NCBI GenBank assembly: GCA_977030845.1
Contig: OZ365112.1
Coordinates: 16,182,001 to 16,246,000 of the forward strand
Length of the DNA stretch: 64,000 nt
Origin: Fimbriosthenelais zetlandica
Taxonomy: Eukaryota
Direction of reading: 5' to 3'
Shown: piece by piece, positions 21,701-57,580 of the stretch
Numbering within the stretch: position 1 is the stretch's first letter
Layout of the letters: each line of letters starts with the position of its first letter
Position numbers and translations under genes: made by a program
The notes under the pieces: model-generated
Databases searched by the model: none
Seen by the model: only the letters and a program-made list of their open reading frames with translations
What the model was told of the DNA's origin: nothing

Positions 21701-24700
21701 GCTTCATGCCCACAAGACCTCAGCTGGAGGTATAGAAATACCCTTCCAATATGCACAGACCGATTCTAATGTGATTGCTTCCTGTTTTACTTGAGCTTCA
21801 TCGGGTCACCCCCTTATCCCATTACCATTGCCTTGGGCAGTGGTAACCTCAAACATACCCAGATCCTCTCCCACTCTTTCATCTAATACTGACATGGAGA
21901 CGGCCTTCCCCTGACAAAGTGGTCTGATACATGAAGGAGAAGACTGTCTGCTTCATCCTTGCCTGGTCAGTGATTGCTGTGCAGCCAGGGGTCATAAACT
22001 TCAGCTGGTCCTGCCTGCAAAGCCATTCTCCTTCCAGACGACCAGTGTGACCTGCAGACCAAAGGTTCTCCCTATTTATAGATGCTTTCTAAACACTTTA
22101 CACCGACATTGTGTTTCTTTTTACAATGTCAACCTCGGAAGATCAGTTCAAAAACTGGTATGATTTCAAACTAGGCCTACGAATTGTAAACTGAGTATGA
22201 CTTTTTGTCCTGAATATTTGGAGGTTCACTATACATGTACCAAAACTCTGGCAGTCAGCAACGTTTTGCTCTTTAAGAGTCAAAATCTATCCTTCTGAAA
22301 GACATTTTTCCCTGCATTAAATGCTGTATAAATGAAGAGATCGTATGGCAATAGTCTGAACGAGAAGAAAGGTACTTCTGCGTTCGTGGATGGAAAATAC
22401 CTGATGCTAAAAGAGAAAGATTCCGTGATGAATGACGTAGACGTATTGAATTCCGAAAGTCTATGTCTGTGACCTGTAAACGGTTTCTTTGCCCTCGATT
22501 GTTCTCAGTAAAGACGAAGACCGTCTCGTCTGTCTTCATCTGCCGTAGACCAGTTTCCTTTCAGAAAGCTTTTCAAACTCCCAACATCAGATTCAGGGAA
22601 CTACAGTTGCCACCTAAATTGGCTCATCATCACATTCAGGGGAAAGAGCCTCAGTAGAAAGCCTACTGGTTAAATCGCGAATCTGTATCCTTTTCCGGAT
22701 ATTACAGGTTTTTATTGCAACATGTTTGGCAACATGTTTGGCAACATAAGAGACAAGGTCAAATCTAGCAGCATACTGTCTGGCCCAAACTCTCTTATCA
22801 ATTTTAATCGTCCTCTGCATGCAGTTCGCTGTACATTTCAAATTCACTATTGGAGACTAAGGTCATTGTAGGTATAGCTGCATCAATAGTCACTACAGCA
22901 CTTCAGTATAGGCCAGTCACAGGCCCTCCAGTCAGCCTTGTCATTTATTTGAAGATGTAAATGGGACTGTGTTGACTTGGTGTGCTTCTCTGACAAGGCA
23001 AACAGCTAGGTCGTGACGGCTGGCAAATGCTTGACAGTCTGAGATACATGACAAAGCTGTGCTCCCCCTGCCAAACCCTCCAACCTCCCACAACCTGGCT
23101 ACAGTCATCCACTCCCCACTCCCCACTCTCCACTCTCCTCTCATCCAGGAAACGTGCCTCCTAAACCGGCGGTGAAATACCGATGTTCCTAGAGAAGAAA
23201 GGGATAAGTGGAATTCCCTATGAACTAATCTTAGAACAGTGACGAATCCTGTATGAAAAATCTGCCTTCAAACAGAAAAGGCAGCTAAAGCAGAGATTGT
23301 TCCTTGATAAGCCCCAGTCACACTGTCACGAATTTTACCACGAATCATCACGGATCAGCCTTCCTTGGCCATCCCTGATTAAACGTGGTCAACCGTAGGT
23401 GACATCCCTCATCATCCCTGGTCATCCCTGGTCATCCCTAGTCATCCCTGGTGGTTCGCCAAAGTCTACGATCTTCTACGAAAGTTTTGAAATGTTCAAA
23501 ACTTCCGTAGCCACTCCACGATTCATTGACGGATGAATCAAACCTTAGTGGAAACTTAGCTCTTCCCTTCTAAACCCTAGACCCTCCCTGCTAAACCGTG
23601 AAACATTCGTGGTTATCCCTGGCCTTCCCTGAAGGTACCTACGGCCTGGTTGGACCGTCAGAGTTCGTGAGAGTGCCGTGAGAAGTCTTAGGGCTACCGT
23701 GATGATACTTGGTTATAACCACGGACAACCGTATACATATCGTACATGATCCCTCATTTTCCCTGACAATTCCTTCATGAAAACGTACTAAAACGCTGCA
23801 GAACTTGATGAAAACGTAGCAGATTAACCAAGCCCTCCTTGATTGATCCGTATTACAATTCGTGAGTGTGTGACTAGGGAGCCAATATACCACGGTTCAT
23901 CCGTGGTTCATCCTTGGATTATAAACCGTGGCAATCCGTAGCTTCATTCGGGACAGTGTGACTGGGGCTATAAGCTTTTTCTGGTATGGAAGGTTGGGTT
24001 TTTCATATGTTCCAATATGAAAGGCACAGTTCATAAATACTAAAACTATTGTAGAGGAAGAGCCATGTGGACCTGTATGACAGTGCCTCGGGGCATCCCA
24101 TTTGTATTTACCCAGGCCAAAGCAGGAGGAGTTCTGCTGTCGTTGACTGAACCGAGGCAGAGTCAGACATAAGCCTCGCCTGATGCTTCTAAAGCCTCCA
24201 TATTTGTGTTTGACCATTAGATCCATATCAATCATCCTGCCTTTGCTTGACTTGTGTTTCCGCCTCCGCCCATCTGCCAGCTCTTTTCTTGATTCATCTT
24301 GTTTGGTGTCGAGTATAAATCTCACTAGTCAAATATTTATAACCTTTGTATATTGGGGCATGATGACGTGATATGGAAAATAGCATTTGGCGTCAGGATT
24401 CTAATTTGTATTCATATTAGAGACATTTCCATCACACGTTGGTCATTTTATGAGAGAGTTTTGAGAGGGCAGGAATTGATATCGGAATATTCTGTCATGT
24501 TACAGAAAATGTGACCTTGTTGTATGGCCACTTACTATTCCCCTGATTAAAATGACTTAAATAACATGTTTTAATTGTCTGATTGTTCTCTTCTTACAGT
24601 GACATCTTTGACGCCATGTTCCCTGTCCATCGACATGGTGGTGAAACAATTATCCAACAAGGTAAGAGATCTAACCTAATTACCGCGTATTACCTATCAC

Positions 24701-27700
24701 TGGTCACCTCCACACTATTAAACACTAACTTAGCATATATTGGCCTAACCAACCCTTTTAGCTTCTCATTAATTTTTAACCAAGTTCTTTCAATTCTACC
24801 ACTTTAACTCATGGCCTATTCTGTAGAGACCTGTCAAAACAGTTTCGCTAATTGGAGCCTGTCTGCTGTTATCATTATCGGAAATCTTGTGATCTTCACA
24901 AAATCTCGTTTGCACGAAAGAGTGGGTAGCAGCCGGATGCGGTAGGCAGCTTGCCGTGATGGGAGACGGTCAGCTGCCTGGCGGGCCCGGATGTCGCAGG
25001 CATAAAGGTCCACGACACATATAGCATCATCTCATTACATTCAGTCTTCACCAACATTTTCACGTTTTCCCGAGCAGTCTGATGCCCTTTAATTCCAGTT
25101 TTTTCCATAAAGTTACTATAAAGTTAGAAAATGCCATTTGGCACCGTTTCATTTATGGCCAGGAAATAGTATAGATGTTTTATCTGACATCTGAAAGCCT
25201 TCATGCTGGTGGTCTGTTTTTTTATCTTCTGACATACGCCCATGTCCATCGTGTAGGCAAATAATTAATTTCCGATGATGGGTGGCTTCAGGTTTCCTTC
25301 AAGGTACTGCTGGCCAAATCAGCTCCATCCAAACAGTTTGCACAATGTGCAACAGTTGCTTGGTAGGAAGACCCTCTGCTATGCTTCAAGCCCAGGGCTC
25401 TGATACCACCATAATCCATAAGGCTGCCTCACTCTAACCACCCGCCCCATGTCAAGGCTGCCTTACTCTAACCACCCGCCCCATGTCAAGGCTGCCTTAC
25501 TCTAACCACCCGCCCCATGCCAAGGCTGCCTTACTCTAACCACCCGCCCCATGTCAAGGCTGCCTCACTCTAACCACCCGCCCCATGTCAAGGCTGCCTC
25601 ACTCTAACCACCCGCCCCATGTCAAGGCTGCCTCACTCTAACCACCCCGCCCCATGTCAAGGCTGCCTCACTCTAACCACCCGCCCCATGTCAAGGCTGC
25701 CTCACTCTTACCACCCGCCCCATGTCAAGGCTGCCTCCCCCTATCTGGGATCTCTGATAGTTCAGGTCATGGCCCTTTCTCCTCAACAAACCCCTTTATG
25801 TAACACTGACTCAATTTAGATACAAGGCTGATGGATGATCCCTCATTAATCCCTCTTTTGTTGTCATGTACGATGGAAAGATACTCCATCATACATGGCG
25901 CTCTTTATTCACTTCATTTCACACCGTCAACAGCTTTGTTGGTCTACCCCTTTCATCTTCATATTAAACCCTGGTATGATCCTATACCCTGCCATTATAA
26001 ACACGCATGTTTGCAGTGTCTCAAAAATAGTCCATACTACTTTTAGTCCCTTGAGCTTTCCAGATGAATAAATTTCAGAAAAGACTATGTCCATGTCAGA
26101 TTTCATTTTGTGGTGAATATATCATTTTGTAACACACAGTTCAAATATATTTTTTATGTTTCAGGTGACGAGGGAGACAATTTCTATGTAATCGACCAAG
26201 GAGATGTTGATGTAAGTATGAATAACCTTCTGGGTTCCTATCCAGTCGATGCGCCATAACAGACCCACAGGGGATGGAGTGTCATGCCTTTCAACCTTCC
26301 TTTGTCAAAAGAATATTTTGCCTTCGGCTTCCCCTACCAGTTTTCCAGCCTCCTGCTTCTATCTTCTCTCCCCTCAGTCTGAGGTGTATGTAGCATCCTG
26401 CACACAGCTGCTGGTAATATTGAGAAGGAATATTTGTGCCAAATTTTGCCTTAGAATAGCACGATCGCATGGACTGGCCAATGGTATGAGAACAGATTTG
26501 GTTTTAATGAACTTCAGTGTAGCAAGGGCTGAGGTCTGAAAGCATAGCACCAGGGTCAGTGAGTGAATGTGGGGAGCAATTCTGGGACTGACTCATTATT
26601 CAGGTCACACTCTGCTCCCTACCTGATAAATCTCTATTTGCGTGATTATTGGAGGTGCCAGGTGCCACTATGCTCCACCAATCCATCCATAGTGTACACC
26701 GTACGTGTTGTGGACAAGTGGTCACTTGGGGGAGACCCATTACTAGGTGCATCTAAATATCCCCTGAAAATTATTTGCTCATTTCGTGGATCCATATTGC
26801 CTTGCATCGACGGTAAAAAACAAACTTAAGAAAGTCTATACTGGTGTGAGTCAGAATGCTGGGTGATATAATGTAGCTCTGCTCTGCCTTGACTGGGCTG
26901 GCTCTGTTGGTGGTTTTGATATTCAGTAGAGGCTTTATTGTCTGACCTTCCAAATCAAATGGCACCAACCCTTTAATAACCAGCCTGCTTTTTAAGAGTC
27001 TGAATATCAAAATATTTTTGTCGTAATAGCAAGTTGGCTTTGTATGTCATTGATTGGGTACTTTAACTGTGAGCTGCTCTATGCGACATGGAGCAGCTCC
27101 TTTCTACTTACCCTGATTGGAGGCAGTCAATATGGGAAGTAGTTATGGCCTGGCTTCCGTCACTGATTGCCTCTGATGGTGGCCTAGATTGCTCTATTCC
27201 TAGAGATATCGACCCCTTCTAAACCATGCTGCCTTCATTCAGGTGATAGGCCTACCATGCACAATGAAAATTCTCCTCTTCTACCTCACCCAATCCAAAC
27301 TTCACAAATGGAAAATGACCTAATTTATTATTTTAGGAGACGGAGACGTACCTCTTTGAATATAACTAATATGATTGTCGTCAGTATTCACATGGAAGTA
27401 GATATATATTCTTGCAGAATTGTTTTTCTAAATTATTTTGTTTTTCTTTCAGGTCTATGTTAACAATGAATTGGTCGTTGTCATCGGAGATGGCGGTAGT
27501 TTTGGAGAGCTAGCTCTTATCTATGGAACACCTCGAGCTGCCACAGTGAAGGTAGGTTTACCATTAGAACCAAATCATTTTATTTTTCGGTTCATTATGA
27601 CATTATGATTCCTTTGTATAAATCAAAAACCCGATGGGAAAGGTGGTTAATTTTTCTTACATCCTATTTCATGTGTCATCAACTGGAAATAATACTTTTG

Positions 27701-37544: not shown

Positions 37545-38512
37545 TACTTTCAGTTAGAATGAACCAAGTTTTATTACAATAATTATAGGTCCCTACAGGG
37601 CGGCGCACGGCGGCCATCTTGAAAATCTTTAGTTCCCGAATCTTCCGTCGATGAACAAGGCTTAAGTGGGAGAGGGCGCTACAGGCATCGATCTCAACTG
37701 GAGATAGGGTTAGTTTTTCCTCTTTATCTCGTGAAAAACCATATCATCTTGTTTCAAAACGATATGACAGTAGCATTACAAAGACAGGAGTGAGCTAGGA
37801 GTGGAATCAGCTTCATGTATTGTTAATTTTTTTCTTAGGAGGCCTTCAAGTGGATGGGAATGAAGCGATTTAAAGTATTATTATTATATATGACTTTTGT
37901 TTTATTCAATAATACACTGTACAATTATTAGGAACGTTCCATGCATTTCTCACATTCAAAAGAGGGGGCATGAGATAGTGCCTCCCTGGAACAAAACTGT
38001 CACTGGATGACATTAATAAACCAACAAAAATATTACTTCGCTTCACATACTGCCCATCACTGAATACATATGGAAAAGTAGATCTGTACAAATATTCCAA
38101 TAAATTTCAACTCTACTAAACAAAAGATGGATAGATAGTTGCCAAAAATATGAAAGAATTATGCATTAGAATGCTCTGTTTGGTCTACGACTACTGTGCT
38201 GGAATTTGCTCAGAATAATTTATATGCCTGTGAATGAATTTATTCGTCAGATTACATGATTATATCTTCAAAGTATAATGATCTATCTTAGCGCATCTCT
38301 AGAAATAGAAAATAAATTCTATTCTTCTAATTTCCAGAATTCAAGATTCATATGCAGGCGATATCAAACTAACAATATCTATGGAATTGAATATTTTAAA
38401 GAAAAGTATCAGTCACGCATCCACTTCCACTCTACATATCGATCAAAGTCTATAGATTAGTATTGCGAGAATGAACATCCCAGAAAAACAGCACAGAGTC
38501 GTATAGAGCTAG

Positions 38513-41500
38513 TCATTTCACACCATTCATTTTAAGGAACGCTTCCTGGGAGGGGTCCCGGCCTCGGAAGAGGCGGAACACTTGGTTGGCAGAGAGACCA
38601 CCACCTTCCTCCAAAAATGTCTCTCTGAATCTGAAAACAGCGGACATGTCATTAGATACATGAATATGACGATACAGATATAGTAAAAAGAATGTTGAAT
38701 GATTTGATTTACCTCTGTCCTATTACTGATACGGCCTGTGTGTCCTCCAGGCCAGCTTCTTCAAAGGCCCTGTACACATCGGATGCGATCATCTGAAAAA
38801 AATATAGTTCATGATTACTCCGATCCGTTGCACCCCTAACAGCCTTAAAGATAAGAATCTCTAGGAAACCCAATGACTATCTGGCAATACACCAGGGGTA
38901 GGTAAAGGAATTGAAGCACACATACTGACCTCTGCCCATTTAAATGAGTAGTAAGCTGCTGGGTACTGATCAGAGAATATGGCTGTGAGGGAGCAGGGGT
39001 GGTTGTCACTCTCTGGCTGACTGATGGGCATGAACTGATCCCACACACGAGTCATTATACGATGCCAATGGTCATCACTGAAATAATTAGTCATAGGTCA
39101 GGCATATATAACTCCAGAAATTCACAAAAATCAAAAGATGTCGGAGTTATTCCATACCTTATGTACATCTCCATGTCCAGAGCAGCATAATACAACTGCC
39201 TCATTGTATCATAACCATTCATGTATCTATGTGCTGGAAAATTTAAATTATTAAATTATCATGAACACAACTGAATTATTACAATATTCATGTGGGTGTC
39301 GGATACCTATAAAAAGTACCTTTAAGAATCTCATTTATGAGGCTTTCTTCGATTTTTTCTCCGGTTTGCCAGTGACCACTCAGCCTTCGTAGTGTGGTGG
39401 GGTTGTAGAGAAGCATAGTCATCACATTGGCGCTAATCTACAAGTCAAGAAATTACAGTTTTACATTAAGATGAAGCCAGAGCTAATAGCAAAATAGAGG
39501 GTATAAAGAGCTGGTCACATACCTGTAGGGCATCCCATTCTATGTTCCTCTGTCCACCTATCTCACTGTAAGGTACCTTCGTCAAAATCTGCTGGAGGCC
39601 ATGTCCGAACTAGGGAGAGGAAAGGGGAAAATGATGAACAGAGGGCAGAATTGATTGGTCTGAATCATGAAATAACTTGTATAAAATGAGAGTGGAGATG
39701 TGTGAATTTTATACCTCATAGAAAAGAGTTGCTAAAGCCTCGACAGAGAGAAGGCCAGGCTGGTCTGAGCTCAGAGGTCGAGGTAGGTTAAAGATGAGAT
39801 AGGACAGCGGGGTGGTACCTAAAATATCACTCCTGTCTGAAATATGATGGAAACGATTAAGACAGAAATTAGAAGTGATGTAATGAGAGGATCTAATAAT
39901 CAAATATCTCAAAATATGGTGTGTACCTCTTCCAGGTTCCATCCAAGCACCAGCTAGTTTCTCTGGTCGTGCATAGGGATCCAAAAAGAAGGCTCCAATA
40001 TATTTTCCATCTGTTACAAAAGAATATTAGTAAGATTATCTTTAACCAAAAAGCAATACACATGCAAGAGTTATATCACCAGAAGGAGTTATAGAAAGGC
40101 AGAAGCAAGAATCCTCAGTCAGGTTATAGCGCACCTTCTTTGTTGAAAACTTTCATAAATTTCACATGTGGATCCCAAGTGCTGACCTCCCCTGTACAAT
40201 CCTGAAATAATTCATATATCATATAAATGAAGGGAATAGAATGATTACATTGGTAGACAGCAACAATCGTAATGGGAATACATATTTTAAACTCAGTACT
40301 TAAGGTATTTTTGTTGAAAGTGAACAATTATTTATATTACCTTGATTTGAATACCGAAGAGTTCATCACATATTTCGAATAGACCAGTGAGTACATGTTC
40401 AAGAGGATAATATTCAGAGACTTCACCAGGATCTATGCTGCAGAAAAGAGTAAGAAATATCTATCTAAACCCCAGATATGTTTTAGAAATTCCCTGGACC
40501 TACTTACAATTTAAAAGATAGGATTTAAAAGATATCTCTTTTGTAACAAATGTAAAATACTTACTTGAACAGGTGTTGTCTGTGCCTACGTCTCCAGTAT
40601 GCCAAATCCCAAGCTTGAACAGTACCATTAAATCCTTCTGATGTGGCAAATTGTTGCACTTGTGCTACTTCTTCCCCTGCTATAGGCAGGAATTTTGATT
40701 TAAAACTGAAAATATAAATATAGAGAAAATCACCCATTGAAATTTGTTTTGTTAGTGGACAAAAATTAATCATATAGAACTCGATTTAAGGAAAATCTTT
40801 AAAAGTAAAACATATGCTTACTTTTCTATCATACTCATTACATTCTCGACGCTCCCGGCCATTTTGGTTTCTAGGGACATTTCTGCATAGTTTTCATACC
40901 CTAATAAATTAGCAAGATCCTTCCTAAAAGAAAAAATAGAAGAGTTACATGTATAGAGATGGAATGCCTAAACTACATAATATGCAATGTCATCTGTAAA
41001 AACCAGTAAAAGTTATCTTACCTATACAATCGAATGTCCTTAATGACATTGTGGTTTGACAAATTTTGAGAATCTTGTTGGATTGAGGCTCTATTATTGA
41101 AGGCCTGCCAGATGTTCCATCGCATTGTGCTGTCTGAACAATACTCGAGGAAGGGCGAGTAGATGCTCTGATTTAGTGTGACCTTCCACGGCCCTCGACT
41201 GGGATTGGTCCTATAAATCATTCAGATGCAAATTAAAAATCAAATATATTTAAGCTATAAGTTTGTCTGAGAAATTCTCTGAACAATATTAGATCACACT
41301 ACCACATTTATTTCCCAGTATATACTCAAATGATGAAATTGGAACATACTTATCAGCAGCCATTTGCCTCAGAATAGATCTGGGCATCTCTTCTATTTTT
41401 CCGAGGTCATCAATGGAGTGTGAGAACATGTTATGTGATAGCATAACCCTATTTCTAGAAACAAAAAATAAAAGCAGGTGAGGGTTTATTTAAAATATCG

Positions 41501-43072
41501 AGACAATGATAATAAATTAACTCATGTGTAGCCCATTTCCTTTTGAAAAACCTAGCAGATAAGGATCTCTTCCAATACCTCAGCTTATTCTCTAATATCA
41601 AAGGCTATTTACCTGAATGACTTTTTGGAATTCACAAGATTTGCGAGGATGTCCATGAATTTCTTCTTGTCTGGCCCCTCGAAATCTATACCATTGTATT
41701 TTGCCTCATTCAGATACATTTTGACCAATCGCTGCTGGTGGGCTGTAAGATTGTCAGATCCTGCTCCAACCTCCTGGAATCCAGAGAAAACTCTCAACCT
41801 CCTCACAAAACCGGTAAATGACATGCTCTTTTAAATATTTTAAATTGTAATTTCACAAATTGCACTCACCTTTACAGCTCTGTAGAGTTCTGGACTCAAC
41901 CATTTCTCATTCTTTGCTCGTTCTACTTGGGGATGGACCTAAAATATTTTTGATTTGTCAATAAAAGCAATTTTTAAATATCCACAAGGCAGTTTTATTT
42001 ACCTGAATACACAGTGGATTGACAAGCAAATAGACCTATTTTTCTTGTTTATAATGGAGGAAATAATCACCCGGCTGAAGGCAGTTCTGTAATCATCATC
42101 AGATGACACATAGTTGAGAATCTTTGCAGTCCGCCATCCGAAATTCATAGGGACACTTAGACGTTCGATGGGATCGAACACTGAGCTGAATGTTTTCTTC
42201 ATATTTGGATCTGGCAAAATATGATAAGGTTTTATAATTGTAAATGATTTCATGGAGCAATAATAGGGTAGGCCTCAATATTATTTAACAAGAAAACAAA
42301 GCTGTAAATAATAGTTACTTCTGCAGGTAGATTTTCAGTTACATAGCACTAATATAGGGTGTTGACTTTTATTAATCTTTTTATTAAACAATCCCATACC
42401 TCTGAGATTGTCAACGTGCTTGCCAAATGAAACATCATACTCAAGGGCAAGTTTGGCACATCCTGTGATGGTCTTGTCAGGGTTGATGGAGCTAAAGTCA
42501 GGATAATCATTCACCCTCATGATGGAGTTCGTTTCTGGTGTATCTGGCGGAATTTCTGGTAACCTTTTTTCAATAGAAATGACTTTTTTAATACCGGTAT
42601 TATACCAATAACATTTTTCAATGATTTTCCCCATTATTAAATTAATATTATTTAATATATTTTAATTAACAATATTATCAATAACATCCTACACAAGTCA
42701 TGGCATTGAACACAAGAAAGAGGCAGCCCCCCAGTTTCAACGACTGTCAAATCTCAATATGAGGACGTCAATACACATGATCATGGAGAACGTGATCATG
42801 ATCAAATCGCACCCGTCTGCCCCGATGCAGCAGTCGGACGTCAGGCTGACAGTGACGGACAGACAGGTGCCCGAAGCGGGACCAGGAAGGTCATAGGGAA
42901 AAACTAGAAGTTCATTGATGCACTGAACATAAATCTGGTTGACACAAATGTAACATATGATTTCGCATACTTACAGAACATAATATGACGAAGACGCATG
43001 TCTGGCAGCATTATATAAGGGTTTAAACCTAAAACCCTTGGTAGGGCGGCATCGGATCATGGAGGCCGCCAT
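38513..43072 (-). CDS. Oligopeptidase A-like (peptidase family M3A) protein, 721 aa, 19 coding exons, degenerate active site, probable mitochondrial presequence
   Basis: Exons (minus strand, in gene order) 42975-43072, 42400-42563, 42071-42210, 41870-41938, 41613-41773, 41350-41454, 41022-41210, 40822-40923, 40565-40705, 40341-40437, 40135-40201, 39927-40010, 39715-39836, 39523-39609, 39320-39437, 39158-39233, 38930-39077, 38713-38792, 38513-38630 join in frame (2166 nt, all GT-AG). OpdA/OOP-type motifs: GPWKVTL, LLGYENYAEMSLETKMAGSVENV, AWDLAYW, FFLDPYARPEK, LIFNLPRP, YPAAYYSFKWAE, FRLFRGRDPS. Confidence 0.93.
39523..39836 (-). CDS. M3A-like exons 13-14 carrying the degenerate zinc motif (TLFYE|FGHGLQQ...IEWDALQ)
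   Basis: Exon 39715-39836 ends ...ALATLFYE|GTATAA. Exon 39523-39609 reads FGHGLQQILTKVPYSEIGGQRNIEWDALQ|GTATGT. Confidence 0.92.
42975..43072 (-). CDS. M3A-like exon 1 (mitochondrial-presequence-like)
   Basis: CAAGATGGCG start; MAASMIRCRPTKGFRFKPLYNAARHASSSYYV is Arg/Lys/Ser/Ala-rich with no acidic residues; phase-2 GTAAGT donor compatible with exon 2. Confidence 0.85.
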
Positions 43073-43319
43073 CTTGGAAATACTGAGGAATGCTGGGAAC
43101 ATAAACAAATCCCAAAAACACAAAAGTTCAAAATACACATTTTCTTTTATTATGGACAGTATTCTTGATTTGGAATTTATTAAAACATGTTAATATTTTT
43201 TGGGATATGGAATAGGTGTATTTTGTTTATATCCGTGATGATTAATCGGGGGAATACCGGAAGCTTTTTGATGACGTAGGTGGTAGGGTAAGCCTCAGCA
43301 CAGAAGTGAAAATGGCGGC
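43065..43319. promoter_or_regulatory. Bidirectional promoter between the M3A-like gene and G-alpha12/13
   Basis: Divergent ATGs 239 bp apart. YY1-type AAGATGGCGGC (43065-43075, minus) and AAAATGGCGGC (43309-43319, plus) overlap the start codons. ETS-like ACCGGAAG at 43256-43263 and CRE-like TGACGT at 43272-43277. Confidence 0.7.
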
Positions 43320-43779
43320 CTTGGACTGGCTGGCACATTGTTGTGCGTCAGAAGAATTGAAAAGATCTAGGATGAGAAGTCGAGAGATCGATAAACAACT
43401 AGCGAAGGAGAAAATACAATACCAAAGGACTCAAAAAATCCTACTCTTAGGATCTGGAGAAAGTGGGAAGAGCACATTTCTGAAACAAATGCGGATAATA
43501 CATGGGCAAAAATTCCAGGAAGAGGAGTTACAGGGATACAAGTCTGTGATTTACGCCAATATTGTGAAGGGAATGAAAGTTCTTGTTGATGCCAGAGACA
43601 AACTCAGCATTCCCTGGGGAAACGAACAAAATGCTCACCATGCCCAAAATGTATTTAGTTATGACAATAACATAAAGTTAGATGACAAAGTATTTCACGA
43701 ATTCGTCAATTCACTCAAGTGTTTGTGGAACGATAAAGGAATAAGAACTGCTTTTGATCGGAGACGTGAATTCCAACTG
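43312..43779 (+). CDS. GNA12: G-alpha12/13 exon 1
   Basis: [19 protein letters not shown]...FDRRREFQL|GTAAGT. Confidence 0.94.
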
Positions 43780-46700
43780 GTAAGTTGAAGAGAAAATATC
43801 GTCAATTTTACTTTATTTGTCTTTACTTTGCATAGTTTATAAAGTAGAAGAATTAGTCAATACACTAATAATTAGCGTTAAGAGGTGGGGAGCTGCTATT
43901 CCAGTCTAAAGCCTAAGTCCAGCATATCGGATCAGTGTCAACATTAGTGCAGGGGTTTTTAGGTCAGTCATGGTTTATGCCACCCTCGTTCAAAACTAGG
44001 CCCATAAGGCCAAATAGCACCACTGCCAACACTAGTTTCACTAATGCTTGTACCATTGGTACTCTCTACAACAGTTAACTTCAGATCCTAGACCAGGATC
44101 TATGACTGAACTGATGCAGGGGGGCGTGGTCAACCCAGTCCCAGGTTTTGTTTTCTAAATATAAGCCTTGGTCCAAGCCAGGTTTGGTTAGGAGAAACAA
44201 GAGAGGTAAACCTGGAGGATGCTAAAAGAATACCCTTCGGTTAAACTCTCTTCATGTTGCAAACTTTTTTTTAGTTTTTATTTTATCCATTTATGTCTGT
44301 CTTGTGTTTTCTTAAGCTGAGTGTCTGCCCATTACTAGTATTGATAGTTAGTGAAGTCACATTCCATGCTATTGGATCATTATGGTCCTAATAAACACAA
44401 GGTACCTTATTTATACCTTAGTGATTTTGTTTGATAACACCCTACATGCAATGGTGACATACCATCCTATGCTAATTTCTGTTCGAGCAATGTTTCATCT
44501 GTCAAATAATATGCTGCCTTAATTTGAAGCCTCAGCCCCTAACAAGATGTCCATGTGTTGTGTAATGTGTACTATTTATATTACTAAATATAAATGACAT
44601 TTTATCATCTCTGTCATGCAGAATATTTGGGGTACCGGGTACATATTCCAATTCTATAATTTCATTTGAAAGTGACTGTAATGCCATGCATTATTCCTGT
44701 CATAAAACAGTATATAGATTTATTTCATGTCATTGTGTATTGCGAAAAAGCGCTGTCTGTTATCAGATGTAGTGATTTTGTGTTCTAATTGTACATTTAC
44801 ATGGGTGCAGGAGTGTTTGTTTAGACGTGAGAGTACACAATTGTATCCTATAATTAACCAGGCAGAAGATAAAGGACCATCCGGATCTGAATGATAACTG
44901 AGTTTAAATCTACATTTAAGCTTTATTTCCATATCTACCCTTCGGTAGAATCAACCCATTGGTAGATTGCACCTAGTCTAGGAGTTCAGCATTACTCATA
45001 TTCAGTTCTGGCACCAGTGTAAAAAATGTATTTTCTAAATGCGGTGGTGTCATTCTTGGAAACCATACACCTTATGAGGATTCATTAGGTATCTTATGGA
45101 GATATACAGAATGATGTCGCATTCACTTGAGACTCCAGGATTTGACCTGAAAAAGTCCTCGATCTGCCATGGCTATATTGAATTTCTTCCAAGTGATTCA
45201 CGTCAGTTAAATATCACGTTACATTTGTTATGATGTTATTCATATACATCAATAAATATACATATCCAGGCTGGGTCGGGCAGATAAAACGTGTGAGATA
45301 CTTAAATTAGTTTCACAGTTCTTTTCTGAGAAGTAAAATAAATAATTAATAGGGACCTGGGTGTAACTGTAAGGGATGATTCATCATTTCTTTCTTAATC
45401 TGGTATTAAATTGAACTCATTATTAAAGCCTTGGAGACTGCACTCGGCCAGTGTATCATAGTTTTGGCTTTATTGCCCTACTTGACTTTCTGAGAACCAC
45501 CAGCTGATATGTAGCTTATTTTAGCTTAATCCCTTGTATCCATAACGGCCTGGATTATTTCTAAAGTTAGGCTCTGGCTTCATCATAGATATCATATTGT
45601 TATACTGATAATTTGTGATAGTAGGGTATTTTCTTTTGCACAGAAGACATCATTCTTGTACTGTATAGTCTGCAGACAAGAATAGGAGTGTTTTATAGAG
45701 ATGTAGCAATTAAAACTAGGTTGTTTGAAAGCTTGGCCTGGGTAGGACCAATAGTTTATCCTTTGGGGTCTCACCACGCCCTTCTCATCGCTTAGATGTG
45801 CTAGTGTTATGTGTGATGAGGCCACACTAAACTTAGAAGATGTTACAAATATGAGAGGAAAAAATAGCGAGTTGAGAATAAATGTCTATACAGCTGAGAG
45901 GAAAAATAAATTTAGTGAGACATAAATAGCATGTGGGTGTAAGATGTGTTTGCATGAACTGTGAAATTTCAGTTTTCCGTCAGTTGCCTGTTCATTATCA
46001 GGGGCCAAATATAAAATGTTCACTCAGAAAGACGTTTGTATGAATTGCTACTTTGAGGTTAGCATTTTGAGGGTAGTCCAGATCTACTTATCGGTGAGCT
46101 AGACGAAAAGAATCCAGATCAAAACGAAATGAATCCAAATCAAAACAGCAGGAAACCCACCGCACACAGGTCATTATGCCATGGTGGTAACCAACCCAGA
46201 CTTGTCAGGCAGTGCTATAGAAGAGGGTGTTGAGTGTGTGAGGGGTGGGTGTGGAGGGGTGTGGGCATTGGAGTTTGAGCCCAGTAACTCACAGAACTAT
46301 ATGGCATGAGAGCTGTTGGAGAGGTACCCCAATGAGCTCTATACACAAACACATGGATCCAAGACACGGGGTCAGTGAGCGCGTTGCCATGGTTAATTCA
46401 CGCTATACTGGACCTTAAGCTGGTGTAGAGGAGGAGGGTGCACAGTGAGCTGCTCTTCACAGTGGTGGTCTGTTAGGGAGGCAGGTCATCTATCATTCAC
46501 ACATCTCCAAACCTTCCTATTACCCTGTCAACACTCCAGCCTTAATCAATGTCCCCTGTATCTCACTCACAGGAGGTGGTGGTAAATTAGAACCATTCAC
46601 AGATAAACCATTACTACTAGACTGTGACACAGCCAACATGTCACCTTCTAGGTATTTGTATGTCCGGTGACCTATGGTATAATTAATATGTGTGGCTCTT

Positions 46701-55700: not shown

Positions 55701-57580
55701 AAAATTGTACAATTAACATTGCATTGGAGTAGGACAGGTCTTGTCCAGACAATATTGATAGTGTTATTAGTAATAAGTGAACCACATGGTTTTACCCCGT
55801 TATGTAATATGTCTACTTGCTCTTTGTCCATTATTTCCACGTTCAGTAATATTGCCACATTTGTGAGAAAACGATCTTAGTTGTGTTCCATGAACTGATC
55901 TTTAATAGTGATTTAAACAGGCTTTGCTGACTCAGCAAGATCCTCTTGAAATATTATAAATGAGCTTATAGTCCTCTGCCTCCTACTTGCCTCTTTCCGG
56001 AATAAATTTCATCAGTTCAAAAAAGGGCTTTCCTAGGCACACTGCCTCCAGTAGTCTTTAATCCATTTAGGTGTAGGAAGAGTGGGGCAGACTTGCCTCA
56101 ATCAAGCATCTGCATTAAGTTAGTGAATGCTGGAGGCAATGTGGGTCTTCATGCTTTAAATGACAGAGAAGATAAACTAACGTCACTGATATGTATTTCA
56201 TGAATTCATATAGGTCTTCATTTACGCATATTATCATGGTGTAATTCTGTAGTTAATTCCCCCGAAGTAGCAGTTAATCTGAATATTGTTGATTATGAAA
56301 AAGTTGATGAAGTGATTAATACCACTATTAGTAATATAGTTAGAAATACAGAGGTTGTCTCCCGAGTATAAATAACCTCAGAAAATACATAAAATTTGGT
56401 AAAGGTCATGAAGTTGCTCCACATGAACATACAGTGTGTCAGTAGGTCGGATTATAAGCAAATAAAGGCAGTTTTATCATTAGGGTGAAAGCTGCCCCCA
56501 CATGCCTTCCAACTATCAGCTGGCCGGGACATGGGAGAGACATTGTTCTCGATTCTAGAATAGTCTATCTGTACTTTTTCTAGTCTATTCGTTCTGCACG
56601 TTTCTGGAATATTTAGTCTTTATATTTCACTTTTTCTAGAATAGTCTCTACGTGACATATTCGTGTATCGTCTGCTATTTGTACTTCACTTTTACTAGAA
56701 TAATCTATTTATACTCCGCTTTTGCTTTTTCGCGTGAAAGTTTATCTAGAATTATATAATGATCCATAACAACGCCATTGCCATTGCTAACAAAAAGAAT
56801 GAATCAAAACATTTTTAGACAAGTTTATAAAGGCATTAATACATTTTTTTAAACCCAATATTGTAACACGCACCCGACCTTTCATGACACTCACATTGTA
56901 GCAAATCATTTCTCTATAGATTGTTTAATTCTCCATTTAATGTTATTAAAGTAATATATATGTGTGTGTTCCACATTCTGAAATATTTGCTGATTTTGTT
57001 TCTCACTCAGGGTTACACCCCTATTACAAAAGACATCCTTCATGCCCGAAAAGCTACCAAAGGCATCTGGGAGTGCGAGTTTGTAATCAAAGCGGTCCCT
57101 TTTCGGTTTGTTGATGTTGGTGGCCAGCGGTCGCAGCGACAGAAGTGGTATCAATGTTTCGACAGCGTCACCTCCATCCTTTTCCTGGTGAGCAGCTCCG
57201 AGTTTGACCAGGTGCTCATGGAGGATCGCAAGACTAACCGCCTCATGGAGTCAGTCTCTATTTTCGAGACCATCGTCAACAACAAAGCTTTCTCTAACGT
57301 CTCTATTATCCTCTTCCTCAACAAAACGGATCTACTGGAGGATAAAATAAAAGAAGTTTCCATCAATGACTATTTCCCCGAGTTTGAGGGTAACCCACGT
57401 AGCCTCGATGATGTGCAAAAGTTTGAGCTGGACTTGTTAGATTCACGGCGTCGTGAGCGGAGCAAGCCACTCTTCCATCACTTCACTACAGCAGTGGACA
57501 CAGAGAATATCAAGTTTGTTTTCCAAGCGGTGAAAGATACTATCTTACAACATAACCTTGTGTCTATCATGCTACAATAA
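43312..57580 (+). CDS. GNA12: Heterotrimeric G protein alpha subunit, G12/13 class (concertina-like), 362 aa, 3 coding exons
   Basis: Exons 43312-43779, 54346-54396, 57011-57580 join in phase 0. Motifs: [62 protein letters not shown]-terminal IMLQ typical of G12/13. GNA12 versus GNA13 orthology cannot be resolved for an invertebrate single-copy gene. Confidence 0.93.
54346..54396 (+). CDS. GNA12: G-alpha12/13 exon 2
   Basis: TACAG|[17 protein letters not shown]|GTAAGT, 51 nt. Confidence 0.93.
57011..57580 (+). CDS. GNA12: G-alpha12/13 exon 3
   Basis: CTCAG|[18 protein letters not shown]...HNLVSIMLQ*. Confidence 0.95.

Follow-up and report, generated by a model that had tools for sequence, protein, structure and literature searches.

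A predicted mitochondrial oligopeptidase A descendant with a degenerate zinc site and a conserved fold in an annelid and other protostomes

What does a peptidase gene encode once most of its active site has changed and its reading frame has stayed open? This question is raised by a gene on the minus strand (43072 to 38513) of a 64,000-nucleotide stretch of DNA from Fimbriosthenelais zetlandica (assembly GCA_977030845.1, contig OZ365112.1, positions 16,182,001 to 16,246,000). The whole stretch is referred to here as the window, and positions are given in its numbering. The gene belongs to the M3A peptidase family and is of the OpdA/OOP type. We consider it likely that its product is the annelid ortholog of a protostome-wide OpdA/OOP descendant that has kept the M3A fold and now has a binding role in mitochondria; its zinc peptidase function would be gone because two of the three zinc ligands, as well as the His and Tyr of the catalytic loop, have been lost.

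The gene was rebuilt from the raw letters by reading the minus strand of 38300 to 43300, listing the open frames, and joining the exons. The resulting model has 19 exons with GT...AG borders at all 18 introns and a coding sequence of 2166 nt (721 amino acids), with zero internal stops and one terminal stop, running from an ATG at 43072 to 43070 to a TGA at 38515 to 38513. It reproduces the uninterrupted 19-exon frame proposed in a preliminary description of the locus. The start at 43072 (MAAS...) is the one common to the orthologs. A second in-frame ATG at 43100 to 43102 (minus strand), 10 codons upstream and in a weaker context, would add MFPAFLSISK to the presequence described below. Nearly all intron positions are common to the orthologous gene of Ridgeia piscesae (JAODUO010000847.1, 501 to 15274), including that of the intron splitting the zinc motif between (Y)E and FGH; the sole intron of the window gene missing in Ridgeia is the one after Gln542. 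The Ridgeia gene spans 14.8 kb, compared to 4.6 kb in the window. A tblastn search of the 64-kb window with the 721-residue model recovered only its own locus, with no second copy or tandem paralog, and a six-frame motif scan of the introns recovered no spare HExxH-type exon.

In M3 enzymes, zinc is held by the two His residues of HEXXH and a separate Glu, while the HEXXH Glu activates or positions the attacking water (PMC7565970). A large effect on activity has been reported for His600 of thimet oligopeptidase (PMC9266445). The window protein has Tyr512 (TAT, 39720 to 39718) at the position of the first zinc-ligand His, giving the motif YEFGH, and retains Glu513 at the catalytic Glu position and His516 as the second zinc ligand. 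An intron divides this motif directly after Glu513, between ..TLFYE in exon 13 and FGHGL.. in exon 14. The third zinc-ligand Glu is replaced by Gln542 (CAG, 39525 to 39523), the last codon of exon 14 in EWDALQ, and the L-PSQFMENW segment has become I-SANVMTML (ISANVMTML at 39437 to 39411). The former catalytic loop, LTAIFSDQYPAAYYSF at 38989 to 38942, carries Ala639 (38983 to 38981) in place of His, Asp-Gln in place of Gly-Gly, and Phe652 (38944 to 38942) in place of the last Tyr; we take the position of Phe652 to be the equivalent of Tyr612 of thimet oligopeptidase. All of these substitutions had been described earlier, with the Tyr512 and Gln542 codons at the same coordinates.

Sequences from the Protein Data Bank (PDB) were compared with single exons by HMMER. 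Exon 17 (CSLTAIFSDQYPAAYYSFKWAE) aligned without gaps to Arabidopsis OOP (4KA7/4KA8) and CyOP (4PUT), and exon 14 paired FGHGLQQILTK..RNIEWDAL with FGHALQHMLTK..RNIEWDAV of the same two proteins; exon 13 was too short a query and had no match. A full-length MAFFT alignment to Escherichia coli OpdA (28% identity over 668 columns) agreed with HMMER on the gapless loop and paired TLFYEFGHGL with TLFHEFGHGL, WDALQISANVMTML with WDAVELPSQFMENW, and LTAIFSDQYPAAYYSF with the OpdA loop. The changes relative to OpdA are H469->Y, E499->Q, H601->A, G605/G606->D/Q, and Y614->F, with residue numbers following MG1655 PrlC as translated in the present analysis. Eleven positions were scored (H469, E470, H473, E499, H601, G605, G606, Y607, Y611, Y612, and Y614, in E. 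coli numbering), and six of them are altered in the window protein. Among the features that characterize M3A enzymes, the catalytic Glu is present, and the full HEXXH His pair, the third-ligand Glu, and the His, Gly-Gly, and last Tyr of the catalytic loop are not.

The fold itself is predicted to be complete. Seven of nine exons tested singly matched Pfam Peptidase_M3 (PF01432) in colinear order (profile positions 1-38, 44-74, 215-247, 248-274, 278-313, 350-396, and 421-455), with only the exon 17 piece above the curated cut-off, and one exon had a weak match to PF19310. Nearly all orthologs listed carry PF19310 together with PF01432, or PF01432 alone. Structure was predicted for the Ridgeia ortholog (P0101) as a stand-in for the window protein, to which it is 59% identical over the full length and with which it shares the Tyr/Gln/Ala (Y/Q/A) site. 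The AlphaFold2 model, built from a 71-sequence alignment with the Ridgeia protein first, had a mean predicted local distance difference test score (pLDDT) of 93.2 and a predicted template modeling score (pTM) of 0.90; pLDDT fell below 50 only at residues 1 to 37, which are disordered in the model. An ESM Atlas model of the Ridgeia protein is consistent with it. In a Foldseek search of the PDB, OOP (4KA7/4KA8) and CyOP (4PUT) ranked at the top, followed by thimet oligopeptidase, neurolysin, and Dcp. Template modeling (TM) scores, by query/target length, were 0.81/0.84 to OOP 4KA7 and 0.86/0.90 to 4PUT, at 34% identity. By this model, the complete two-domain M3A clam-shell is kept, and the protein is placed in M3A by its fold.

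Relatives were collected from a library of 1.84-billion representative proteins, searched with exon 7 and then with full-length matches as queries. Each family search was limited to the best 120 matches, and statements of absence (of an intact paralog, or of members in Drosophila, nematodes, cnidarians, and chordates) are provisional. The exact window protein was not found in the protein collections searched. Its nearest full-length relatives among the matches listed were P0103, from a Logan contig (60% identity), and the Ridgeia protein. Family members came from molluscs, annelids, a nemertean, Priapulus, chelicerates, crustaceans, insects, a springtail, tardigrades, and two echinoderms; beyond these animals, the matches were bacterial M3 peptidases, chiefly from cyanobacteria and planctomycetes. 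No cnidarian or chordate member was among the matches listed. Most named orthologs appear in NCBI and UniRef as "probable cytosolic oligopeptidase A" or "oligopeptidase A," as had been foreseen for automatic annotation of this gene.

The state of the active site follows the animal lineages. HEHE at the four core positions, with HGGYYYY in the loop, was found in 75 of 77 bacterial homologs and in E. coli OpdA, and the other two homologs differ at one loop position; H469, E470, H473, and E499 are invariant in all 77. The echinoderm proteins (Patiria P0242 and Diadema P0245) are HEHE and keep the loop His and all Tyr residues, and Priapulus (P0117) is HEHE with H601->Q. Apart from Priapulus, each protostome sequence lacks one or more of the four core residues; the 55 sequences sampled from spiralians and panarthropods all have a degenerate site. 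H-E-H plus Gln is the state of many spiralians (Owenia, Lineus, Littorina, Batillaria, Babylonia, Lymnaea, Physella, and Bulinus). The window protein, the Ridgeia protein, P0103, and P0104 have Y-E-H-Q with Ala at 601, and P0209 combines the Tyr and the Ala with a third-ligand Pro. In most arthropods, the state is x-K/R-H-E. Some beetles (P0159, P0193, P0195, P0223, and P0227) are H-K-H-E, and their proteins are possibly intermediates that bind zinc without hydrolyzing. Within the set used for the tree, spiralians kept E499 in 0 of 26 sequences and E470 in 18 of 26, and panarthropods kept E470 in 0 of 29 (Lys or Arg in 26 of 29) and E499 in 16 of 29. The preliminary description had envisaged a YEFGH/DALQ clade distinct from a catalytically intact paralog. 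The combination is indeed common to the Ridgeia protein, P0103, and P0104, but degenerate sites extend through the whole protostome group, and the best 120 matches per family search included no intact OpdA-type copy of spiralian or arthropod origin, its absence being unproven.

A maximum likelihood tree of 66 rows (quick IQ-TREE search, LG+C20, bacterial root, P0209 left out) recovered the animal members as monophyletic (support, 99), with the echinoderms on short branches. The protostome stem branch is long (0.58) and is followed by Priapulus and then by Spiralia (100) and the panarthropod group. The window protein groups with Ridgeia, Paralvinella, Helobdella, P0103, and P0104 in an annelid clade that has full (100%) support. 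The gene tree agrees with the species tree; Priapulus falls outside the other ecdysozoans (Shimodaira-Hasegawa-like approximate likelihood ratio test, 91%), a placement that may be a long-branch effect. Taken together, these sequence relationships indicate that the window gene is the single-copy OpdA/OOP-type ortholog of protostomes. Identity to a cyanobacterial OpdA is 53 to 55% for the echinoderms, 41% for Priapulus, and 34% for the window protein, and the lower values in protostomes therefore point to much faster evolution there. The animal OpdA-type clade adjoins cyanobacterial and planctomycete sequences; ancient retention and transfer are both possible origins of the animal gene.

Since spiralians and panarthropods each keep a residue that the other has lost, the first inactivating changes must have been independent, wherever Priapulus sits. 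Catalysis would thus have been lost at least two times, through Glu499->Gln in Spiralia and Glu470->Lys/Arg in Panarthropoda. The distribution of site states further indicates that the loss is old and was stepwise, with E499Q common to many spiralians and H469Y and H601A arising later, within annelids.

Comparison of the coding sequence of the window gene with those of P0103 and P0104 gave proportions of synonymous differences (pS) of 0.82 to 0.84, which are saturated (pS above 0.75, at which the Nei-Gojobori synonymous distance is undefined), and a proportion of nonsynonymous differences (pN) of 0.27. Differences from P0103 at the three codon positions were 0.33, 0.22, and 0.60. Because pS is saturated while pN is only 0.27, the comparison indicates purifying selection since the split of the window, P0103, and P0104 lineages, all of which carry the dead site. 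Two JGI contigs of P0104 differ at synonymous sites only. P0103 and P0104 are complete open reading frames (ORFs) on intronless contigs of 2.4 to 2.8 kb (2645 nt for the Logan contig of P0103), and contigs of transcript length that lack introns point to transcripts. Conservation reaches 85% or more at 123 positions across 56 protostome sequences. The Y/Q/A site is not an artifact of the window assembly because it also occurs in Ridgeia (genome), P0103, and P0104 (two JGI contigs), which argues that the dead site is real and reflects neither error nor decay. A dead site common to relatives, together with purifying selection and intact ORFs, supports the earlier proposal of a maintained, non-catalytic M3A protein.

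Such a protein would have to do a job other than cutting, and the N terminus suggests where. The window protein extends approximately 42 residues past the bacterial start; its first 30 residues contain six Arg/Lys and no Asp/Glu, the first acidic residue is at 36, and the maximum helical moment is 0.66. The resemblance to a presequence noted in the preliminary description recurs within the family: almost every animal member, the intact echinoderm proteins among them, has a basic, acid-free presequence-like stretch of approximately 30 residues, which is absent in bacterial members. A conserved Arg lies 5 to 8 residues ahead of Tyr-Tyr, and R24-H-A-S of the window protein presumably fits the R-2 type of MPP cleavage pattern. 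These features point to a cleavable presequence and predicted import into the mitochondrial matrix. The presequence is followed in protostomes by the motif Y[YI]VLLPEIPPDTPE (in full, Y[YI]VLLPE[IV]PPDTPE), with 86 to 96% conservation per position; in the window protein, where it reads YYVLLPEIPPDTPE, Y30, V32, L33, P35, E36, and D40 are at least 86% conserved among the 56 protostome sequences. Priapulus has the motif, whereas echinoderm and bacterial homologs lack it. Because the protostome stem is long and Priapulus, which is still HEHE, already has the motif, the motif and the accelerated evolution appear to be older than the catalytic losses.

The mechanism that we consider most likely draws on the location of this constraint and on an analogy with organellar pseudopeptidases (PMC11266112). 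The precursor would be imported into the mitochondrial matrix by means of its cleavable basic presequence, MPP would remove the presequence, and the mature protein would begin with the probably flexible tail. On the protostome stem, the enzyme would have gained a binding role, with its rigid M3A body and the new N-terminal linear motif together serving to dock onto another matrix factor as an adaptor or partner. Hydrolysis would afterwards have been dispensable and would have decayed separately in different lineages. Peptidase activity is, by this account, predicted to be absent from the window protein, which would act through binding. For the still broader proposal of a protostome-wide M3 pseudopeptidase family, in which the new tail and a non-hydrolytic mitochondrial role arose on the stem, catalysis was discarded at least two times, and Priapulus is a surviving intermediate, we see an even chance.

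Several observations weigh against this account. The binding partner is a conjecture drawn from analogy and from where the constraint lies. The expression and splicing of the window gene are predicted from genomic DNA alone, and the non-catalytic state, the loss of zinc, and the localization are likewise read from sequence. Glu513 and His516 are still present, and metal coordination by Tyr and Gln is possible in principle. The N-terminal motif has low confidence in the model (pLDDT of approximately 50), which fits a flexible linear motif and proves nothing. Many formerly invariant residues around the site are now highly variable, so that conservation probably does not concern the ancestral peptide-binding groove. 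Finally, the preliminary description had called the site systematically dismantled. The losses are real, but of 163 positions that are nearly invariant in bacteria, the window protein retains 102, and retention at catalytic-loop positions (5/11) is not significantly below that elsewhere (P = 0.33; Fisher's test). The alignments indicate that the site is lost, yet inside a generally diverged protein, and a targeted dismantling is without statistical backing.

It is possible, though in our view unlikely, that the ancestral channel is still in use and that the protein is a non-cleaving trap or chaperone for short peptides in the matrix, presequence fragments among them, which corresponds to the peptide-binding scaffold suggested in the preliminary description. 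The Ridgeia model shows a complete clam-shell, Y611, Y612, W616, and other loop residues are still conserved, and plant OOP degrades targeting peptides of 8 to 23 residues in organelles, as cited in a passage of PMC9291397. Against a trap, positions that active enzymes hold invariant around the site (500-507, 601, 605/606, 614, and others such as 72, 78, 171, 172, and 418) show some of the lowest retention and highest variability in protostomes, with 500, 503, 506, and 507 among the least retained; a conserved ligand groove would be expected to look different. The most conspicuous new constraint is found in the N-terminal tail rather than in the fold.

The retained Glu513 and His516 also allow for a protein that is still a hydrolase, either with a remodeled metal site (Tyr512, His516, and Gln542, with Glu513 as general base) or with another metal; we regard this as quite improbable. 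A full HExxH beside Gln499 has been kept in separate spiralian lineages, which hints at continued constraint, and the residues on either side of the motif (F, G, L, T, G, and E-W-D) hardly vary in protostomes. However, no substitute set of ligands is conserved: positions 469, 499, and 601 have approximately 3 bits of entropy across protostomes, and position 469 is Tyr, Cys, or Phe within the annelid clade. The window protein also lacks the equivalents of His600 and Tyr612 and the loop Gly-Gly. In leukotriene A4 hydrolase, His->Tyr and Glu->Gln changes of zinc ligands reportedly abolish zinc binding. Residual catalysis therefore seems unlikely for the Y/Q/A protein and is more conceivable for the spiralian forms with HExxH and Gln.

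A decaying copy, or an assembly or annotation artifact without function, would suit a gene whose expression is a prediction and whose exact protein is missing from the collections searched, but it is highly improbable given the 18 canonical introns and open frame, the saturated pS against the low pN, the 59 to 60% full-length identity to the Ridgeia protein and P0103 with the same Y/Q/A site and conserved introns, and the retention of the gene in many protostome phyla. A nucleic-acid-binding or mitoribosome role finds no support; the isoelectric point of the mature region is 5.75, the family median is 6.1 to 6.4, and there is no basic shift.

The features of the locus are listed in Table 1. 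The M3 gene has a G-protein alpha subunit gene as its head-to-head neighbor, with ORFs at 43306 to 43788 and 56921 to 57580 (both plus strand) that match positions 3-137 and 153-333 of the Pfam G-alpha profile. The divergent spacing of approximately 230 bp suggests that the stretch between the two genes is a shared bidirectional promoter. Elsewhere in the window, positions 22000 to 26000 have a G+C content of 0.45, compared to approximately 0.39, and a strongly negative GC skew (-0.19); a 142-residue ORF inside this region (23897 to 24325, minus strand) has no Pfam match.

Table 1. Positions of the M3A gene, its exons, and adjoining features in the window
Feature	Position	Strand	Basis
Whole coding region, predicted M3A (OpdA/OOP-type) pseudopeptidase	38513..43072	-	Exon model, open coding sequence, intron match to Ridgeia
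Exon 1, start codon and presequence-like N terminus MAASMIRCRPTKGFRFKPLYNAARHASSS..	43072-42975	-	
Exon 2	42563-42400	-	
Exon 3	42210-42071	-	
Exon 4	41938-41870	-	
Exon 5	41773-41613	-	
Exon 6	41454-41350	-	
Exon 7	41210-41022	-	
Exon 8	40923-40822	-	
Exon 9	40705-40565	-	
Exon 10	40437-40341	-	
Exon 11	40201-40135	-	
Exon 12	40010-39927	-	
Exon 13, ends ..TLFYE	39836-39715	-	Alignment to E. coli OpdA
Exon 14, FGHGLQQ...EWDALQ	39609-39523	-	HMMER vs Arabidopsis OOP/CyOP; E. coli OpdA alignment
Exon 15, opens with ISANVMTML	39437-39320	-	E. coli OpdA alignment
Exon 16	39233-39158	-	
Exon 17, former catalytic loop LTAIFSDQYPAAYYSF	39077-38930	-	Gapless HMMER vs 4KA7, 4PUT; Pfam Peptidase_M3 positions 350-396
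Exon 18	38792-38713	-	
Exon 19	38630-38513	-	
Codons of protostome-specific motif YYVLLPEIPPDTPE, residues 30-43, intron 1 between	42985-42975 + 42563-42533	-	
Intergenic stretch between G-alpha ORF and M3 start codon, ~230 bp	43073..43305	.	

The sequences of this family are already public and automatically annotated; what is new is the scale of the dead-site family across protostomes. In full-text literature searches, we found no description of an M3 pseudopeptidase or of inactivity in the animal OpdA-type family, and MEROPS may flag such sequences automatically as non-peptidase homologs. A 2024 review of metallo-pseudopeptidases covers members of M1, M12, M13, M14, M15, M16, M24, and M41 and none of M3, and a 2022 survey of OOP evolution is silent on inactive forms. 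The name "probable cytosolic oligopeptidase A" (EC 3.4.24.70) is probably wrong twice for spiralians and arthropods, whose proteins are likely neither cytosolic nor peptidases, and the misnaming carries over into the annotation of metabolism and degradomes. Among mitochondrial pseudoenzymes, MPP-alpha and the bc1 core proteins proved essential in the import and respiratory machinery. Some lineage-specific component may be missing from this picture, and a conserved, predicted matrix protein of approximately 700 residues found in molluscs, annelids, nemerteans, arthropods, and tardigrades is a candidate. The family also forms a natural series, from intact (echinoderms and Priapulus) through HExxH plus Gln (many spiralians) and HKxxH plus Glu (some beetles) to fully degraded (the window protein), which lets the transition from enzyme to non-enzyme be tested directly, and orthologs are available in Tribolium, Daphnia, and other genetically tractable organisms.

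A mitochondrial, non-hydrolytic M3A protein of this kind can be compared with several known systems. Arabidopsis OOP (4KA7/4KA8) and CyOP/TOP2 (4PUT) are the best matches in both sequence and structure, with the same fold and length as the window protein, and OOP likewise has an organelle-type N-terminal extension. The HExxH, downstream Glu, and His/Gly-Gly/Tyr loop of OOP and E. coli OpdA (PrlC) correspond to YExxH, Gln, and Ala, Asp-Gln, and Phe in the window protein, whose tail is protostome-only. The echinoderm and Priapulus orthologs belong to the same group and have a presequence-like N terminus as the window protein does but have kept HEHE, and those of echinoderms, unlike the window protein, are without the N-terminal motif. 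Among animal M3A enzymes, mitochondrial intermediate peptidase did not appear in the Foldseek search of the PDB, and neurolysin fills the mitochondrial oligopeptidase role in vertebrates. Thimet oligopeptidase and neurolysin have the same fold as the Ridgeia model (TM scores of 0.76 to 0.92, by either length, at 20 to 22% identity) and the zinc logic common to M3 (PMC7565970) and, like mitochondrial intermediate peptidase, are distant, intact paralogs. Loss of a HEXXH Glu has a precedent in ACE3 of the structurally related M2 family, a gluzincin in which this residue is Gln (PMC1925091), and among the metallo-pseudopeptidases MPP-alpha and bc1 core (M16), FtsHi (M41), Ebp1 (M24), and Goe (M13), several work in organelle import or processing complexes (PMC11266112). 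These known metallo-pseudopeptidases belong to other peptidase families, and in them, as in the family of the window protein, catalytic residues have been lost while the fold and selection have been kept.

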